From Podarcis cretensis (taxonomy: Eukaryota), in NCBI GenBank assembly GCA_951804945.1, contig OX638160.1, forward strand, positions 21,080,001-21,144,000: a stretch of 64,000 nucleotides of DNA, in the 5' to 3' direction. This document shows, piece after piece, positions 22,313 through 58,087 of this stretch (its first letter is position 1; every line of letters begins with the position of its first letter). The notes beneath the pieces were generated by a model, which did not search any database, had not been told where the DNA came from, and saw only the letters and a list, made by a program, of their open reading frames with translations. The position numbers and the translations under genes were made by a program.

Positions 22313-22525
<213 letters not shown>

Positions 22526-30329: not shown

Positions 30330-30459
30330 NNNNNNNNNNNNNNNNNNNNNNNNNNNNNNNNNNNNNNNNNNNNNNNNNNNNNNNNNNNNNNNNNNNNNNN
30401 NNNNNNNNNNNNNNNNNNNNNNNNNNNNNNNNNNNNNNNNNNNNNNNNNNNNNNNNNNN
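30330..30459. other. Assembly gap (N run)
   Basis: Run of Ns abutting the 5' end of a SINE. Confidence 0.99.
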
Positions 30460-31580: not shown

Positions 31581-31658
31581 ATCCATGAAAAACTGCATTA
31601 CTATGAAAAACAGAGCCCTGTGCCCATGTTGCACGGCGCATCAGCTTTGGCAGATGAT
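31581..31658 (+). CDS. MPP7: MPP7 coding exon 3 ([26 protein letters not shown])
   Basis: ctcctAG acceptor, GTAAGT donor, 78 nt, phase 0->0. Confidence 0.97.
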
Positions 31659-33589
31659 GTAAGTGTCCCTGATGAGACCATTGGCACCATATTTCCCCAA
31701 ACTGTCTGAAAGCAGAGTATAGAATCAGTATATGAATGGGACCGTGTGAGCTGGGTGTGCAAAGGTTTCCAGCGATTTGTCATCACAGGATTGCTAATGT
31801 TGTTTTGATTTTTATTAGACATGTTTCTTTTATAATAACACAGCATCTAGATAGAGTCTTGTTCAGCCTTGGTACCACAAAAGAAAAATGGCAGGTTAGA
31901 AGTCTACAGTGAAGGTGAAGCTGTTAGCTTCTGGTGTGTTATAAGAGTCATAGTCAAGAGGAATGTTTTCTAAAAATAAAGATAAATGATATAGCTGAAG
32001 TGCTGACAGAATAAGAAAAATGACTGATAATACTAAAAGAAATGAGGCTTATGAAAGATATAGGAAGGGGTTGTCAGAAAATAGCTGTTTAAAAAAGAAG
32101 CAGAGATTTATATATATTAAAGCTTTCCAAATTACTTTCATAACTAAAAACTAAAATCTAGACGGGTTGGCATTGATAGAGTATTTAATTTCCTGCTACT
32201 ATAATTTTTATTAATAAAAATCAAGCCTGCCTTTTCTGCATTATATGGTGAATTCTACAACCCTGATGAATTGTGTGCACACCTGTATAAACTATGACAG
32301 AGCTTGTGAGGTAGGCAGAATAAAAAGTAAGTTAAACTGATTTAAGTGAAACTCATGCATGCTTGACACAGTGGGAGCACACTCAAGGCTACAGTACAGG
32401 TTTTTTTACAGTACAATATTTGGTACAGTACAGTTTTTTTGTAAACAATCTATACATTGATGGTCTGTGTGGTTGCCCATTCTAATTTCTTGTAGGTAAT
32501 GGCACTCTAAAAATTTATTTGACATAATCATACACAGAATTGCTTCATGCCAGTAGAGATATAGACACAATTTTGCAGATTCACTTTCACTGTTGCTGGA
32601 AGTTCCATCATTGTGAGGTGTTGCAAAATTCAGAACAAGAATGTTTCAAACTGAGAGACTCTCTCCCGAGAACTTAAAATGTACCCTGTAATTTGTCCTT
32701 GCTTCCTTTATTCAAAAGCATGGATGGAGAATCTGTAGACCTCAAGATGATTTTAGAATCCAACTCCCCTCACCCCCAGCCAGCATGACTAGTGGTCAGG
32801 AATGAAGGGAATCATAGCCCAACAACATCTGGTGGAGTGTTAGATTCCTCATCTCTGTTCTAATCCTGTAGCAGGCATAACATGTTAAGCCTAAAACTAA
32901 TTTTCAGATGAGTTGAGTAATCCTGGCATTTGATTAACCTGTTGTATTTTCAGGGTAGTGTTTTGTGATATAGCCCATATATGATTGGGTTTCTTATTGA
33001 AGGTGATCTTTCAGCCTTTAGAATGCTTTTATATCTGGTAACCTAATACAAGCCATGTTCCTGTGATTAACTTGTCTGACATTTAACAAGCTACTTGTCT
33101 TGTGTATGTAAACATGATAAAGTTGATAATACTAGCACTCTGCTTCCTTATCCCAGCCCTAAACAGAATAGCTACTGTGGCAATTTGGAAGCAATGTGGA
33201 TTTCTCCACTTCATTCAGAAGCTGTTTTTTATAGACAGTGTCAGTGGTTGATCCAGTCATTTTTACAAGCAGCCCTTTGTCTGCACGCAAAGGACCATTC
33301 ACTCAGATGAAGTGCAGGGATTTGCCCTCATTGCTATAAATCAGAATGTGATCTGGGTGTGCTGGTGCCAGATATGATTACTTTAGTCAAACTCAGTTGA
33401 AAGACCTGGCCAGAATTTAGCATAAGGGCCAGAAGATGAAGAGTAATGATTGATAGTCTGTTTTTCTTCATGCTGAACACACTGGAAAGTAATAACCTTG
33501 AACAGGATTGATTCCTGGTTGTCACTGACACGCTGAGTAAAACAATGCTCTTGCTAATGTTCTTTGTGTCACTTCAATCCCCTTTGCAG

Positions 33590-42706: not shown

Positions 42707-42771
42707 GAGGCTTGCACTAAGAAGATCAGATGTACAGGTTCAGCCCTTGAAAGTTTCCAATAGAAAATCAT
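42707..42771 (+). CDS. MPP7: MPP7 coding exon 10 (HOOK: RLALRRSDVQVQPLKVSNRKS-S)
   Basis: ttatAG / GTAAGT boundaries, 65 nt, phase 2->1. The last base is T. Confidence 0.95.
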
Positions 42772-47617: not shown

Positions 47618-47638
47618 CTGAGGAAACAGTTGAGTGTG
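47618..47638 (+). CDS. MPP7: Candidate MPP7 alternative microexon A, 21 nt (S-EETVEC-)
   Basis: Pyrimidine-rich tract with TGC, ttctaAG acceptor and GTAGGT donor. Phase 1->1, matching the flanking exons. Confidence 0.65.
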
Positions 47639-47735
47639 GTAGGTGTTTTACCCCCCCCCCCTTTTATTCTTCCATTATGTCTTCAGTCCATGTAATCACT
47701 TTGCATCCTATTTTTCCCCCTTTTGCGCTTCTCAG

Positions 47736-47747
47736 AGGAAATTAAAG
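47736..47747 (+). CDS. MPP7: Candidate MPP7 alternative microexon B, 12 nt (E-EIK-)
   Basis: Long pyrimidine tract, ttttGCgcttctcAG acceptor (TGC close to the 3'ss) and AAG/GTACAT donor. Phase 1->1. Confidence 0.65.
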
Positions 47748-48444
47748 GTACATGTACAAGTTTCCCTGCTGGGCTGCAAGTGATGGCTTAAAAACTAAGT
47801 ATTCTAGGTCATCACTGACTTAGAGGCAATTAGAAAATAATCCATATAGATAGCAGTATATGTAGTCATAACAGCCAGTTGCTTTGTTGTTGCTGGAATT
47901 GTTGTTCCAGTCCTGAGAATCGTGGTAGCAGAAGACTGTGAACCTGTTGCTTTCTGCACGTAGTTCCTTCAGCACAGTACTGGCATGTGTGCATGAAGAT
48001 TCCTGTGGGGTAAGGCACAGGGATCCACATGTGTTATCCCATTGTCAGATGTGGTTTCTTCCTATGTATTTTTCCTTCTCACATAGCAGGAATTTTGGGG
48101 GCCCAACACAACAGATCTGCCTGTTTCTGCACATGGGTCAAGTATGCAGAACAGGAGTGAATGTGTGCTAAAACCTCTGAATGTTAGCAAAGTAACATAA
48201 CTGAACAAAGCAGATATGTTAACACAAGACATTTCCATGGAGCTAAAGATGATGTCAGTCCTATTGCATGGCTCTAATAGATTATCTTTCTTAAATTCAA
48301 ACTTTGACACTGAATAAAGTGGATCTTGTCCAGTCATTAGGGGTGCAGTTTTGGAACACAGCTTGACAGATGCTTTACTGCTGTGTCAATCTTTAGGGGA
48401 CTTTTCACTTGCAGCATACATTTAAACAGTTGTAGCTCATTGAT

Positions 48445-48605
48445 NNNNNNNNNNNNNNNNNNNNNNNNNNNNNNNNNNNNNNNNNNNNNNNNNNNNNNNN
48501 NNNNNNNNNNNNNNNNNNNNNNNNNNNNNNNNNNNNNNNNNNNNNNNNNNNNNNNNNNNNNNNNNNNNNNNNNNNNNNNNNNNNNNNNNNNNNNNNNNNN
48601 NNNNN
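48445..48605. other. Assembly gap (N run)
   Basis: Run of Ns lying between candidate exons B and C. Confidence 0.99.
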
Positions 48606-49078
48606 AGTATTTTGTTAGACATTTGGTATATTAAATAGGCACCAATACTATTTTATACCTAAGAAGTTATATTCATTAAAAATACCCTTTATGTCTGATC
48701 CATTGAGCCAAATAGAAAAACTCCAGATATTCTTTGTAGATTTCTTTACCTTTGTGTTTCAGCTGTTGAATTTTTTATCCTACATTAAAATATAAAGTAG
48801 AACATCTTTTAAAATCACTTCTTTATTTTCTGTCATGAATAAGGCAATAAAACAGTGAAAAGTTAAATATGCATGTTGCTGTACTCCAAAATCTCTTGCT
48901 CAACTTCAGAACAACACAGTGATTTATTTTTAAGCAGTAGCATATTGAAGGCTTTTTATGCTGTGCTTTCTGCAGTTGTCATTTTTAAGTAACTCTTCTT
49001 TTGCATTCATGGCTGGGCATCTAACTATTCTGCTTTATTTCTTGGCTTTTGTTCTGTACGCTTTTACACTTCATCCAG

Positions 49079-49120
49079 AGGAAGCTGAATGTGCTGGTCA
49101 CAACAGTGGAGCCCACATAG
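49079..49120 (+). CDS. MPP7: Candidate MPP7 alternative exon C, 42 nt (E-EAECAGHNSGAHI-A)
   Basis: CTAAC branch point at 49021, long pyrimidine tract, catccAG acceptor and TAG/GTGAGC donor. Phase 1->1 with an open frame. Confidence 0.75.
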   Translation, partial: RKLNVLVTTVEPT

Positions 49121-52100
49121 GTGAGCAGTTGCTTACAAAAGACTCTCTTTCTTTCTCAGCTTTTTCCTGGATGGCTACAGAGTTTGCAGGTAATGGGCAT
49201 CACTGCATGCAATGAATCTGCTAGATTAAAAAATGGCTCACTGGATTTGACACAAAGGATCTGCATCCTAACCGCAACATATGTTACTAACATTGAAATA
49301 TAGAATGCATTGAAATGCTACCTTGAATATGAGGAAATAATTTACTTGGGTAGAATTTGCAAATAAATTTAAATACTTGTCCTAGACAAAATGCTAGGCT
49401 GGCTATATTCCATCTGACTACATTATTTTTCTATCACAGTGTTCTTCAATCTTGGGTCCCAGATGATATTGAACTACAACTCCCATCAACCCTTATCATT
49501 GAATAAGCTGGTAGGAATGGTGAAAGTTGTAATCTCGTGACTTAGTGTAGGGATAGCCATTGTGGTACCTGACACATGTTGTGGGCTACAATTTTCATCA
49601 TCCCTGACCATTGGCCACTCTGACTTGAGTTGGTGGCTCCATAACATCTAGAGGGTACCACGTTGGCTATTGCTGACTTACAGGGAATTAAGTTAGTACT
49701 GTTGGATGGCTGGGGTTACTTTCTTGTCAATGAGCCAAGTAATGATACCACGGACTGGCTCATCTTTGCTCACCTATTCTTGAAGTGGTTTACTGGTAAT
49801 TCCTTAGAAGATGCTACATAAGAACCATTGTAAGTTGAACATACCATATCAGGTTTTCTTTATTCTTCAAGGAAGGGATGTGGGAAGAGGACACAAATTA
49901 TTGGTAAGAATTGGCCCATATTGGGGGATAAAATGGGGTAGAATAGGGAAGGAGGTTGAGATCATGGTGATGCAGGAACTACTCAGGGTAAATCAGCAGC
50001 ACAAGAGTAGGTGGAAACTAATTGAGGGCATGCTACATTATTAATATATCAATGTCACATGTTTTATTAAAGGGGAAGGTGGCACTGCAAATGGGTAGAC
50101 TGGTAGAGAGGTTTGTGTGTCACCATGCTTCCAGATAGATTTTAGAAGCTGTGCAGTAGCTGAATGATATTTTCTTCCCACTTACATTTATCTGTGCCTT
50201 GAAATAATCATCTGAAACGCTTCTCTGAGTACCCCTGCAAACTGAGGTGCAGAGAGAATAGTCATGAGCGAAAAGGCTTTCTGCTTGTGGAATGCCAGAG
50301 AGGCCCACCTGGCACACATTTTAATGCCTTTCTGGTGCCAGGCAAATAACTTTTCTTATTCATTTTCCCAGGCATTTTTAAATATTTCTAAATTGAAATA
50401 ATTAATTATTTAATCTTTGCATGCTGCTGTGATTTTAGCATGGTCATTTTAGTTCTGTGAAATTTATTTTGGGAGCTCTCTCTGTCTTACTGATTATTGA
50501 TGTGATTTCTAATCTTGTGGTCTCTATTTTATAGTTGTTTTATTCTCTTTAATGATTTCTTGTTTTGTTTAAATAGTTTTTGATCATTGACATCACTCAG
50601 GGAACTGCTGTTGGGAGACTGATAAAAAATAGCAGTACCACTGATGGCACTATTCAAATTAGCAACTTTAATGCCAGACCTTGCTAGTTGATCTCTTCAG
50701 TTGAAATATATGTTTTCTTTAACTTAGTAGAATTGAGTATGATGGATTATCAACCTTAACTCACACCTTTTGTCATACAGAATAAAATTGCATAACAATA
50801 AGTTTCAGATCAAGGAACTAGGTAGTTATCATAAGATTATTCCGAGTAGTTCATGGGATGTGTAGAGGTATGCCAGAATTCATTGGTAATGAGAGGGGGG
50901 GGGACTCCATCACTACTTTTGCCTTCCTCCTACATACCTCTACCAGCAGGGCTCTATGAGCCTCCATGTAGGTGATACTTACATACCCTGAGGTATCTGC
51001 AGTCAGCCTGTTCAGTTTGGTATCACTCTTGGCGCAGTATGTTCACTGATCTCCATTGTTCCAACCAGGATCTGAAGCAGGTTAGCAAGCATTAGTTTAG
51101 AAGGGAACCTTGTGAGTACCAATGCAGATGCACTCTAAGCTAAGGCTTGGAAGGAAACTTTTGCAGGAAAGTTGGAGGAAGAAGGGGAGACCATTGGGTC
51201 ACTCCCAGTTTCTTAACTGTGGATACAGGGTGGAAGTGTTATAGCTTCATTCGGTTTTCATGAAATGTTATTTCTGGGATTCATAATGTGAAACCACAGT
51301 GGTGTCAGACATACAGAATAAAAACTATTTAAAAGCCCTAGTCATATGTCAGGAATTGGGTGTACTGTTATAAGGTGGCCTCAGAAATGAACTTCCTACA
51401 GACTAGAGTTGTCCAGAAATAATTAACTATGTTTTTACTGTGCTAGTCAAGGATATGGTGCTGGTTTAGCAGAGAACTTGCTATTTGTCTATAATGTATG
51501 TCAAACTGTATTAAATTTGACACACAAAGCATGTATATCATCGTAGATTGTGGGCCTGTGGGCAGGGCTTTACCATTTATGTCTAAATGATACCTACTTT
51601 TGTGAGATGTTTGCTGTTGATACTTATTGGAAACAATGGCTTGTCTTTTTCTCTATATACATTGAAGACAAAGGGTTGTCTTCAATGTATATAGATAAAA
51701 AAGTGCATACAATTTTGAAAAACAGTGATTGGTATTAAATGGGCAGCAGTGAAGGACAGAAGTTGAACTAATTTTCATGTAGTTTAATGGTTCAAACCAT
51801 GTAGTTAAACTATTTTGTTGGTAGTAAACTGTTTGCATACTATTAAAAACAATAATTGGTTTCACCCTTTTGGAGAAAACTATTTAAATAGCTATTTACT
51901 AACATACTTAAAAACTCAATAAACTCAATATAAATACCGGTTTTAGACTCCAAGAAGAATGGTGTGAGCCATTACCAGAAGAGGGGGTGTTGCTCCCTTT
52001 TGTTTCTACAGCTAGTTGCTAGAAACATGTTCAGTGTGTAGCATTTCTAAAGTGGTTGATTGCACCTGGAATAGTCTAACACTTTAACCTGACCAGGAAG

Positions 52101-53088
52101 AGGGGATTAGCATTAGGGGGTGGGAAGTCCTGTTCAGTGTTTGCTAATTTGTTACAATCTAGTTTGACCATGAAATGGGATCGATGCAAAGGGTTCTGCA
52201 CCCAGGAGCTGGCTTAATTTTCAGTGCCCTTCACTGATGATCTGTGGAACAAAACAGAGGAAAGTTTTTGCTTTCCCTCAAGTATGTACTTCTAGAGGGG
52301 AGCCTAAACCTTTTGAGCAGCAGCTATTCTTTTGTAGAGTAAGGAGGGCATTCAGATACCCTCCAGGAGTGCCTCTCCCACCAGCAGGAAACAGGGTTAG
52401 CTTGCAAAGTTGACTCCTCTGTTGGAAGGAGCTATCAGGCTGCCATAAGCACCATGGAACCAGTGAAGGCCTTATTTGGTGCCCCCAGCTTTCATTTTTC
52501 AAAAGTACATGTCTCTACCCCTCCTAGGAAAAAAATATAATCAAAGTGTGCAGGTACCCTTCTAAGCACCAGTAATTTCTGTGAAATGATTAGCCAGTGA
52601 GTGAAGTGAGAGCTGTGATTGATAAGTGAGCTGTTTAGACACCAGGCAGTGGGAAAACTTGGGGCTCCAAATAGCTGTTGTCCCTCTTTAGTGCCCTTTT
52701 CCTGCTTCTGTCTTTTATCCTAGTCCTTGGATCCACCCAGTTGCTGCTCTGTTTCACTTTGCTTCCTGCCATCCATATAAAGCAGCTGCTTCAGAAACTG
52801 TTTGAAAATGTGGGAGATGAAATCTGGGGGTCCTTCCCATTGCTGCTTTGTTTGTTTTGCTGCCTATTGGAATGTAGAGTGGGTGGCTGCTTGATAGATG
52901 CCACAGTAGAATACTGGGGGGTGGGGGAAGGTTATGACAACCATTTGTTGTTTCTGCTGCATACCCTGCAATGGGGATTGTTCCAAAGTTGTTTGGGTGA
53001 GGGCAGTGCAGAGGCTTCATATTGATGGTGATAATAATTATCACATTTTTCCTGGTTCTTTTTTATGAGTGAGCAAGTGCATAAGTTT

Positions 53089-53124
<36 letters not shown>

Positions 53125-53148
53125 CACCACCACCACCACCACCACCAC
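53089..53148. repeat. Compound microsatellite (TAC)9(CAC)11
   Basis: Read directly. It explains the poly-Y/H/T/G/S ORFs in the track. Confidence 0.97.
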
Positions 53149-54987
53149 CTTTCTCCTGCTTGTTCTCAAGTGTTGTTGTTTTGCCAGGGGTGGGACATTT
53201 CCAAAGAATCATTCTCATCATCACCTTTTCCTCTTGTCTGTCACACATCAAGCATTGTTCCCAAGTTGTTTGGGAAAGGGAGTGCTCAGTGCAAAGGCAG
53301 AAACACTATTACTGTCATCTCTTCATACACCCCTTATTTCAACAGCTACTCTGATGAGTTTTTAAAATGACTTTCCTTTGCATTTTCCTTGCATTTCTAT
53401 TTGTTGTTGTTGTTTATTAAATTTGTATACCACCCTTCATCTGACAATCACAGCATTAAATTTTTCCCTATTCAGGTGTACTGCTGGCTGTAGTGATTCA
53501 GAATTATTCCTGCATTCAGTTATCTTTTAATTTCTAGCTCTGATCTACAGCAGCACGTCAGAAGTATTGTATTCTCTGGCAGATCAGCATGCTGGGATGC
53601 AGTTGTGATGGGAGTTCAGGGTGGGAGTGATAGAATTCTTAGATGTTTAACTGTGTAACTCATTCATTTAAGGGACAAGACATTCCTGTGGCTCTATTAA
53701 AAGCAGTCACTATTGACTCTGAGCACTACCATTTTGTCTCAATGCTGCTCCCATGGTGTTTATGAAGGTTCTGGTCATACCAATAGTGCACCAGAGGATG
53801 CAAAGTATTGAAACTTAAAGAAGTATCAAGTGGCTTGAATTAAAGGTGATCATACTGATACGTTGGGCTTTTCTAGGCAACATAAAAGGCAAGCAGATCT
53901 TGGTAAGGACAAGCAACAACTCAGTGAAGATCTGTCTCAGCAGGCAAGGAGGCATGAGATCTATTTCCCATCATAAGAAGCCTGTCCTGGATTGCTCAGA
54001 GTAGAACATCTGACTCAAGTGACAAACACGACTGTAGACTGGATGAGCTATGTCGTCTAATATATTGACTGTTTCTCCCCTTAATTATATTTTATCTTGT
54101 GCCCCATTTAATGATGTATGTGTTATCAGAACAAAGCATATTGGTGTTGCAATGATTAAAATTGATTTTTAATGTAATTCAAGACTGTGAAGCTACTAAT
54201 AGGCATAGCTGTCAACGTTTCCCTTTTTTAAAAGGGAAATTCCCTTATTCTGAATAGGATTCCTTGCAAGAAAAGGGAAAAGTTGACAGCTATGACTAAT
54301 AGGTTTTTAGAAACATTCATCGCTGTTGTTGACTTTCTTTGAACCAGTGTGGATGTCAAATATATGATCTCAGCTGGGAACGTATTTAGATAAAGAATGA
54401 GTGTCTTCTGTTGATTCTGCAAGCACTTATTAAAATATCAGTATCTGGGAGTTGTGGTAATTATCAGTATTTTGGGGGTAGGGATATCAGCAAATTTTGC
54501 AAGTCTGTATTACAAATGTGACATTTCCCCATATTTCTGTTCTCAGTGCTTAACAGAGATCTAGCCTGCTATACCAATATGATGTTGTTTTTTTAAAAAA
54601 TACATCATTCCTAATTTTCACCAGCAACCCATACACTTTGAAATTGGCACCTTTTGAATAAAAATATTTTGGTAATGTGATTAGGCCACAATCCTATCTA
54701 AAAACATAGGGGGACTTCAAAAGTAAACACAAAACAATGGAGATTAAAAAGACGTCAAATTTCACCCCATGTGGCTCCCATATGCCCTTGCATGAGCCTA
54801 ATCAAATATATATGGAAAACAATTTGGACTTTGAATTTGGTCCTTTCAAATATAAGGAAGAAAAACTACTAAGTAACAAAAGTAACAAATTCCCATATGA
54901 AGGAGTGTTTGTTACAGATGGGCTACTGGCTAGGCTGATGACAGTAACCCTTGCTTCTGCTTCTTTTTTTAAATCTCGTAACTACAG

Positions 54988-55158
54988 CTGGTTTCAGGAG
55001 GAGTTTCCGTCTCAGCAGAAAAGATAGAAAAACAAACAAGACTATGTATGAATGCAAGAAGAGTGATCAGTACGATACAGCAGATGTCCCAACTTACGAA
55101 GAAGTAGCAAAGTATAGACGACAGCCCAATGAGAAATACAGACTTGTTGTCTTGGTTG
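54988..55158 (+). CDS. MPP7: MPP7 coding exon 11 ([17 protein letters not shown]...[23 protein letters not shown])
   Basis: ctacAG / GTAAGT boundaries, 171 nt, phase 1->1. Covers the HOOK and the start of GUK. Confidence 0.97.
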
Positions 55159-58087
55159 GTAAGTTTTAATTATTTGAATTAGGAACCTAGGTTGTTTAAA
55201 TAAAGACTAAACTGTTTTGTTTCATGTTATCTTTTTGAACTTTAAAAATCATATGCCAAAGCAACCTGAAATGCTCAAAAGTCTCAGGAGGCTCATGTGG
55301 AAGCAGATGTTTCCTGAGGTCCATATATTCAAGTATATTTATAAGGAACCACAAGGGCAGGCAGGTACTGTACAAAGATAAAAATGTACATTAGTTGCTC
55401 TTTTGCCTCTGGCCTCATCCACCACTGGCATGTAAACCTCAGAAAGCTGATAGCTGAAAGATTCAGAGGTGCCCCAGCACAATGGCAGCTAGAGCATGTG
55501 TCTATATGCATATCTGAGAACAGTAAGCATCCAGCATAAAAGTCTCATGGACTTGTTTCATGTCGACCTAGCCATATTGGCCAGATTGCATGAATATTCA
55601 TCATATTTATCCTGGGCCTGAAAGCAAGAAGGATATGAGAAGGCTCTCCAGTATGTGAGGCCCAGAAGCAGAGAGAGTGAACTTCTGTCTTTACAGCTTC
55701 CATCATTCTTTTTCCTGGCCTGACAGCCTGTGCATTCACCTGCTGAAAAGATGATTTTCATCCCTTTTCAGTCACATACATTGTTTTCCCACATGGAAAA
55801 GGAGTACCTGGATGTTTAGCTTGTAGCCTTTCTGTAAAGTTTCTCTCCCTATCATGCAGATGTAATGTGTTTCAGTTCTTAGTTAAGGATTGTGATCTCC
55901 TCTTTGCCAAACACTTAAAACTTGACTCAGAATCTTGCCCGGTTGGGTGAATTACACTGCAGAGGGGAAGGCGTTATAAGCTTTATTCGGCTTTATTTTA
56001 CCTGTCTCAAAAAGACAACATAAGACGAAGCCTCCTGATTCAGGCCAAGGCTCACCTAGTCTAGCATCTTGTTCTCACAGTGGCCAACCACATACCTATA
56101 GGAAGCCCACAAGCAGGACATGAGTGCAATAGCACTCTCCCAAGTTGTAATTCCTGCCAACTGGTATTCAGGTCATAGTCAACAAATAGTCAACTTGTAT
56201 TCATAGTCAACAAATGCCTTGAGATGGTTCACAAGACATTTATTTAGCTAGCTAGCTAGCTAGCTCGCTCCCCTTTTCCTGTGCTCTTAAATCTCATCAC
56301 ACTGTAGGGATAGCTAATCACAAGCAGATCTGCAGTCATGGTGCAAGACTCTATTATTATTATTATTATTAAGTGTTTGACACATAGCCACAGCAGATTT
56401 CATCAGTTTTGCTTCCGTTTGCTTTAGAGTGCCATTCTATTTGACTCCAGGGTAAACCTGTCAGAGTTTTATTATTTGCCAGTAGCCAATAAAAAAATAC
56501 CCACTATTGCATCAATTATGAAGCTAAGGAACATAACTATGAAGCAATCAATATACCAAACACTGTTTGCTAATGTGTTACATAAACAAGCTACCCTTTA
56601 TTTGCAAACAGATTCCTAGTCTTCCTTAACTGTGTTTTATCAAAAATAAGTGGGGCCAATGTGGACTAGTAGCTGACTATAGTTGCAGGGTAGCCCAATC
56701 AAGTGTTCTGTTCTGTTCTGTTCTTGTGTTGGGTGATTCCTATATTACCTCAGCAGTTAATTCCATCATATGCTCAGGACTGGTCACTTGCAGAAACTTA
56801 AAATATGGTCCAGAACATAAAATAGGATGGGGTTATGGTCTGTGAATCTAGTCAGCAATCTCAATACTTGATAACCAATTTAGAGATCTTACAAAAGCCT
56901 TTTAGAAATATTTTCCAATATACTCCATTTACAATCCAACAATTGTAAATTGTTCTTGTACTTGTTGCACTACATTTTAGTTTCTTTTGCAGTAGTGTAT
57001 AGGCCAATGTTTCATTAGCAGAATTTCTTCCATTATAAAAAGTTGCAGACCAGAAGAAATATGACCCTCTATCAGGGACTGTTATGAACTGTAGAACTGC
57101 TGTTTTTATATAGCTCATATCCAAGGGAACACTTAAAATCAGTTTTTAATAAACAGCTTTGTCATTCTCTAACGCACAAGTTCAGGCACCTACTACTGTG
57201 AGCGAGAGATTGTGGGTTCTACACAGCAAGTAATAACATGCTTGAGTTGATTTTACACCTATATCAACAGAGTTCTGTGAAATGGGTGATAAGTAGACTT
57301 TTTATAACAAATCACATATGCTGGCTCTGAGGGATATCTAGAAATTTCGTTTTATTTTGGTGGTACTAAATCAAGTGAAGAAAGTGTGCTTTTACAGTAA
57401 CAAAAGCAGCTCACAAATTTATTGCAGACTTCAGTAATTTTGATGTTTTTCTCTTGGTATTAGAAGCAGCATAAGTCTGGCCAATATCATAAAAATGTCT
57501 TGGGTAAAATGTGGAAAAACTGGCACTGTTAATATAGGTACAGTAGAAATGATCAGATTTAAAAGCTTTGGACATGTTAGTAGTTGCATCCAATACGATG
57601 TGTGAAATACAATTTTGATGTTAGTGCCAGGAAATACAAGGACAAATAATTAAATTTTCACATAATTGGTTGTGGCAAAAATGTTCAGCTATAGTAACTG
57701 AAAACACAATTTATTATTGGAGTCTATTTAAAAAATAATTGGCTGCCAAGTAGATGTTTCACTTAAACTTACTTTAAATAAATGAATTCTAATTCACAGA
57801 ATATAAACTCGATGTAGAGTTTAGACTATCACTGGGATGCGATTCTCCTTTCTATCTAATCCCAGCTCCTGCACATTTGCTGCCATCTGCCTTTTTTCTC
57901 TCTCTTCTACCTAACAGGCCCAGATGGAGGCTCTAACCAGTTTTGGTTCACCCCAATAGATAATTTGGATAGTGAATGCTTATTTAGCTGCATTCTGGTC
58001 CCTAAAATAAAGTAGCCATTGTTTTTAGGTAAGTGGGCCCTGAGCTATGGGGTGGTATGTTAACCCACTGGAGAAAGCACAAGTCTT

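Follow-up and report, generated by a model that had tools for sequence, protein, structure and literature searches.

A described counterpart of the locus analysed here is the HOOK region of DLG1/SAP97, in which the alternatively spliced short exons I2, I3, I4 and I5, situated in the disordered segment that connects SH3 to GUK in this MAGUK, change the binding of 4.1 and of calmodulin and also affect localisation (PMC9307800). In the MPP family the D5/HOOK region is described as a FERM/4.1-binding site in a review that leaves HOOK isoforms of MPP7 unmentioned (PMC7662862). Our literature search for MPP7 HOOK, splice variants or microexons returned only one paper, on mouse islets, whose supplement lists an alternative 21-nt Mpp7 microexon (mm10 chr18:7430395-7430415) that is labelled NEURAL-UP, with PSI values of 0.13 vs 0.40 (PMC8395343).

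The stretch of Podarcis cretensis DNA that we analysed (64,000 nt, the window in what follows) carries the MPP7 gene. Twelve MPP7 coding exons were mapped in order on the + strand between 15605 and 62682 by tblastn with Podarcis MPP7, and their approximate starts are 15605, 22391, 31584, 33587, 38629, 40487, 41158, 41748, 42009, 42707, 54988 and 62596. The HOOK intron, which separates coding exons 10 and 11, contains three short exons, here called m1, m2 and m3, and one assembly gap:

42707 to 42771, + strand: MPP7 coding exon 10, encoding RLALRRSDVQVQPLKVSNRKS, its final T left over in phase 1 after ...NRKS; donor gtaagt; located by tblastn with Podarcis MPP7
47618 to 47638, + strand: m1, a 21-nt cassette exon read as S-EETVEC-(E), with boundaries ..ctaag/CTGAGG..GTGTG/gtaggt; annotated in Podarcis isoform X1
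47736 to 47747, + strand: m2, a 12-nt microexon read as (E)EIK(E), between ..tctcag and gtacat; its consensus pattern is unique in the window
48445 to 48605, no strand: assembly gap of 161 N inside the intron between m2 and m3, touching no exon
49079 to 49120, + strand: m3, a 42-nt cassette exon read as (E)EAECAGHNSGAHI(A), with boundaries ..atccag/AGGAAG..CATAG/gtgagc; located by tblastn and annotated in Podarcis isoform X1
54988 to 55158, + strand: MPP7 coding exon 11, beginning CT GGT TTC AGG AGG... and encoding GFRRSFRL, the basic HOOK motif, and the first part of the GUK domain

All three short exons have lengths divisible by three, run from phase 1 to phase 1 and are flanked by canonical splice sites, with a pyrimidine-rich tract at each acceptor AG, and the codons completed at the successive junctions from exon 10 through m1, m2 and m3 to exon 11 are T+CT=S, G+AG=E, G+AG=E and G+CT=A. 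A sequence-only reading of this region had proposed three AG..GT-bounded phase-1 segments, each with a pyrimidine-rich tract; all of its coordinates match the window sequence, and the insert peptide that it gave is rebuilt exactly from the translations of m1, m2 and m3 together with the junction codons. Splicing of exon 10 straight to m2 or to m3 would generate a TAG stop and the remaining combinations are open, so that in-frame products with the acceptors listed above need m1. The gap at 48445-48605 is 697 nt away from the m2 donor and 473 nt away from the m3 acceptor; since it is wholly intronic, no reading frame crosses it, and the order of m1, m3 and exon 11 agrees with the annotated Podarcis proteins, which supports the collinearity of its two sides. 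A second assembly gap, of 130 N, is found at 30330-30459 between coding exons 2 and 3.

We also observed that m3 starts with AGGAAG/CT, in which the second AG (49083-49084) is a possible in-frame acceptor 6 nt downstream. Joined to it, exon 10 reads T+CT=S followed by ECAGHN..., in frame and free of the TAG. Use of this acceptor would parallel the 589-aa isoforms of other amniotes that contain m3 alone through a shifted acceptor, and would weaken the view of m1 as an obligatory gatekeeper.

When exon 10, m1, m3 and exon 11 are joined, they give, residue for residue, the HOOK of the 597-aa MPP7 isoform X1 of two Podarcis species, P. muralis (XP_028607220, UniProt A0A670J7G2) and P. raffonei (XP_053266571); exon 11 is 100% identical to residues 339-396 of Podarcis MPP7 (tblastn). 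Both 597-aa proteins are without the 12-nt m2, and outside the HOOK the MPP7 of the window departs from both at a small number of residues (IPVADKK; S226), which shows it to come from a third, closely related lacertid. In Podarcis X1, Pfam assigns the SH3 domain to residues 232-295 and the GUK domain to 389-581; the insert, at 318-339, sits between the two and thus belongs to the HOOK linker. When the exon-11 peptide was used as a phmmer query, some of the MPP7 proteins retrieved had an insert at precisely this position and others had none, and further MPP7 relatives were collected through word-index searches using database proteins and through cluster look-ups. The sequence-only reading was correct in that the 576-aa canonical form of MPP7 does not contain m1, m2 and m3, but its description of the cluster as hidden does not hold, as m1 and m3 are part of the annotated Podarcis X1 and all three exons appear in the annotation of dozens of other species.

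We consider m1, m2 and m3 to be genuine alternative cassette exons of the MPP7 HOOK, with m1 and m3 together giving rise to the 597-aa form, m2 being the ortholog of a 12-nt exon of other species, and the module as a whole being older than the split between MPP3 and MPP7; we put the probability of this reading at roughly 0.88. Within it, m2 would still be spliced in lacertids and the insert may modulate the basic motif beside it. The annotated isoforms on which the comparison draws are to be read with the caveat that RefSeq models can rest partly on cross-species protein evidence. The exons are already known, m1 and m3 from the main annotated isoform of the genus and all three across tetrapods, and their discovery value is therefore little: they stand in public annotation, and one of them has probably been catalogued as a mouse neural microexon.

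Among the MPP7 proteins that we fetched, 20 carry no extra residues in the HOOK (+0), a single one contains only m1 (+7), and five contain m1 and m2 (+11). Another 40 contain m3 without the other two, by way of a 3-nt shift of the acceptor (+13), 27 contain m1 with m3 (+20/21), and 46 contain all three exons (+24 to +26), while four show +31 with a fourth, DAVCAK-type piece that is present in some mammals. The three exons together lead to MPP7 isoforms of 600/601 aa, and are found in Myotis, Canis, Cavia, Ovis, Mus, Gallus, Tyto, Chelydra, Gopherus, Dermochelys, Crocodylus, Rana, Xenopus and isoform X2 of the gecko Sphaerodactylus; an equivalent of m2 is also annotated in Athene, Cervus, Mus pahari and Mus musculus X6. 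The 601-aa X1 isoforms of mammals, birds and turtles, like the gecko X2, contain the same pieces in the same order and at the same place (YEETVEC-EEIK/E-EDAEcAGxNSGTYI-AGFRRS), and the 600-aa X2 of Sphaerodactylus townsendi reads SEETVECEEIEEEAECAG... in this region. Squamates differ from other amniotes in the first junction codon, which is S instead of Y, and m3 ends with AHI in Podarcis as opposed to TYI/L in the 601-aa isoforms. The 589-aa form with m3 alone through the shifted acceptor is found in many non-squamates. Outside squamates, RNA-level support comes from salamander proteins with all three exons, which derive from transcript-sized Logan contigs (~5.8 kb).

The fourth piece, 18 nt long and encoding six residues (DAVCAK, DAVCAT or DAVCGT), is located between m3 and exon 11 in some mammalian MPP7 models; no counterpart of DAVCAK was found in the lizard intron at 49121-54987. 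The two cysteines of the insert are poorly conserved, the first position being C, S, Y or W and the second C, Y, S or H, and because these positions vary across species the cysteines are unlikely to be the key feature.

Of the three exons, m2 is the one whose present use in lacertids is most debatable. A degenerate pattern built from the m2 consensus of other species plus the flanking AG and GT has an expected number of 2.4e-5 occurrences in the stretch from m1 to m3. Both strands of the 64-kb window together gave a single occurrence, at m2, which is therefore the true ortholog, with splice sites and frame intact. Its EIK matches the EEIK of mammals and the EEIE of gecko, birds and turtles. 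We did not find m2 in any of the fetched MPP7 models of Podarcis, Anolis, Pogona, Phrynocephalus, Crotalus or Paroedura. Its absence from every non-gecko squamate model retrieved, from pipelines that did recover it in gecko, birds, turtles and mammals, speaks for a situation in which only m1 and m3 are used and m2 is an undecayed ancestral relic that is no longer spliced in lacertids; the donor AAG/gtacat, at 0.6 bits in our crude score, is weak and points in the same direction. What speaks against a relic is that the splice dinucleotides, the frame and the EIK are intact and that the polypyrimidine tract is very strong, the acceptor reaching 8.9 on the same crude scale, the best of all exons scored. 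Chance preservation of the full pattern would amount to about 2e-5, and Podarcis and gecko belong to squamate lineages that have been separate for long. Moreover, annotation often misses 12-nt exons with tissue-restricted inclusion. We consider the relic a serious contender whose chances fall somewhat short of even, and m2 may still be spliced in lacertids at roughly even odds, or a little better. That lacertid annotations appear to be without a 12-nt exon in spite of its intact sequence is of modest value. The more far-reaching proposal that m2 is a live, tissue-restricted microexon of lacertids missed by annotation, and that at the same time the whole acidic module serves, under the control of splicing, to mask the basic HOOK motif within the same molecule, is one we put forward tentatively and regard as rather doubtful in its combined form.

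One might suspect that the squamate isoforms with an insert are annotation artefacts carried over from the proteins of other species, as RefSeq and Ensembl models can draw on cross-species protein alignments. But the squamate models have traits of their own, with S replacing Y at the junction of exon 10 and m1 and with m2 lacking, and such lineage-specific differences look like transcript evidence rather than projection. In addition, the gecko displays seven HOOK combinations, including a tandem-acceptor pair, and the salamander insert is contained in the transcript-sized Logan contigs, so that we judge an artefact to be very improbable.

A crude PWM scan with loose thresholds yielded 10 open, phase-1, AG..GT-bounded candidates in the 12.2-kb HOOK intron, and splice sites and frame alone are thus not beyond chance; it is homology, as judged by comparison of sequences, that lifts m1, m2 and m3 above it. 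In spite of these ten candidates, the reading of the three exons as chance open AG..GT-bounded stretches of a long intron has next to no probability and is refuted by the protein matches, as m1 and m3 agree with annotated Podarcis proteins at every residue, all three correspond to a module whose conservation extends from amphibians to mammals, and no other acidic candidates came up in the scan of the whole window.

The occurrence of the module in amphibians, turtles, crocodilians, birds, mammals and squamates bears out the earlier suggestion that the insert is ancestral, and the likeness to MPP3 that the sequence-only reading had named was recovered as well: isoform X2 of kakapo MPP3 has a homologous acidic piece, YDQSSDKEDCDCEGYFNGQYIAGLRRSFRL, at the same position in the HOOK, before GLRRSFRL. 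This acidic or Cys-rich piece belongs to a paralogous gene, is about 4 residues shorter, has no middle piece of the EEIK type and has diverged in sequence. Another MPP3 model is without the acidic piece. An MPP7-like protein of Conger conger contains an m3-like segment, ...EADYGAISGIHIAGQRRSFRL. The homologous piece in MPP3 and in the MPP7-like protein of Conger indicates that the module predates the split of MPP3 and MPP7.

With respect to tissue regulation, which had also been proposed for this insert, the mouse islet microexon and m1 reside in the same gene and have the same length, and mouse RefSeq X6 reads EETVEC-EEIK-DTGHDGNNSGTYI. Going by length, the mouse 21-nt microexon is probably the ortholog of m1, and its NEURAL-UP behaviour lends only indirect support to tissue regulation of the MPP7 HOOK insert. 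The 3-27 nt range of microexons of the SRRM4/nSR100 type includes m1 (21 nt) and m2 (12 nt), and m3 (42 nt) falls outside of it. As for the UGC motif that such microexons have shortly before their 3' splice site, inspection by eye shows a TGC that precedes m1 by about 20 nt and one that precedes m2 by about 10-12 nt, with none near m3, although this triplet is common by chance.

At its longest the insert has 25 residues and carries a net charge of about -7, and the 26 residues of the basic stretch that follows it directly have a net charge of about +7 (both by charge count). The insert belongs to the linker that runs from the SH3 core to TYEEV, the strand preceding the GUK domain. Taking DLG1 and the FERM-binding HOOK of other MPPs as a guide, we propose that combinatorial inclusion of m1, m2 and m3 would grade both the charge and the length of the HOOK. 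The acidic insert may thereby modulate the adjoining basic HOOK motif, whose counterparts in other MPPs and in DLG1 bind 4.1/FERM proteins or calmodulin, probably through electrostatic masking or through spacing, and altered binding of partners or an altered closure of SH3 on GUK could follow from a basic motif masked or spaced in this way. The HOOK inserts of DLG1/SAP97 are most plausibly what the MPP7 module works like, with the difference that a 4.1 site is created by the basic I3 of DLG1, while the acidic MPP7 insert adjoins a basic motif that already exists; no sequence relationship is claimed between the two. No characterisation of this deeply conserved acidic HOOK insert was found in the MPP7 and MPP papers that we consulted, and a comparison of binding with and without the insert could inform how scaffolds of the MPP family are regulated.

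A search of the PDB gave only PALS1/MPP5, with 4WSI/7M4R as the nearest structures, from constructs without the HOOK. For isoform X2 of the gecko, AlphaFold2 modelling from an alignment of 51 sequences reached a mean pLDDT of 42, which is too poor to be used for the insert.

Elsewhere in the gene, isoform X2 of Podarcis, with 595 aa, lacks the VK of ...SLVK/IHEK and is otherwise the same as X1. The lost residues are at the boundary of coding exons 2 (22391-22516) and 3 (31584-31664), which suggests a 6-nt alternative splice site there. Finally, each of 12 sequencing runs of one organism (~100 million letters each, their kind guessed to be RNA) contains 0.30-0.35 of the sampled words of 48606-55200. 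An even share of this size across a mostly intronic region suggests either a sister species that has diverged by a few percent or a repeat.
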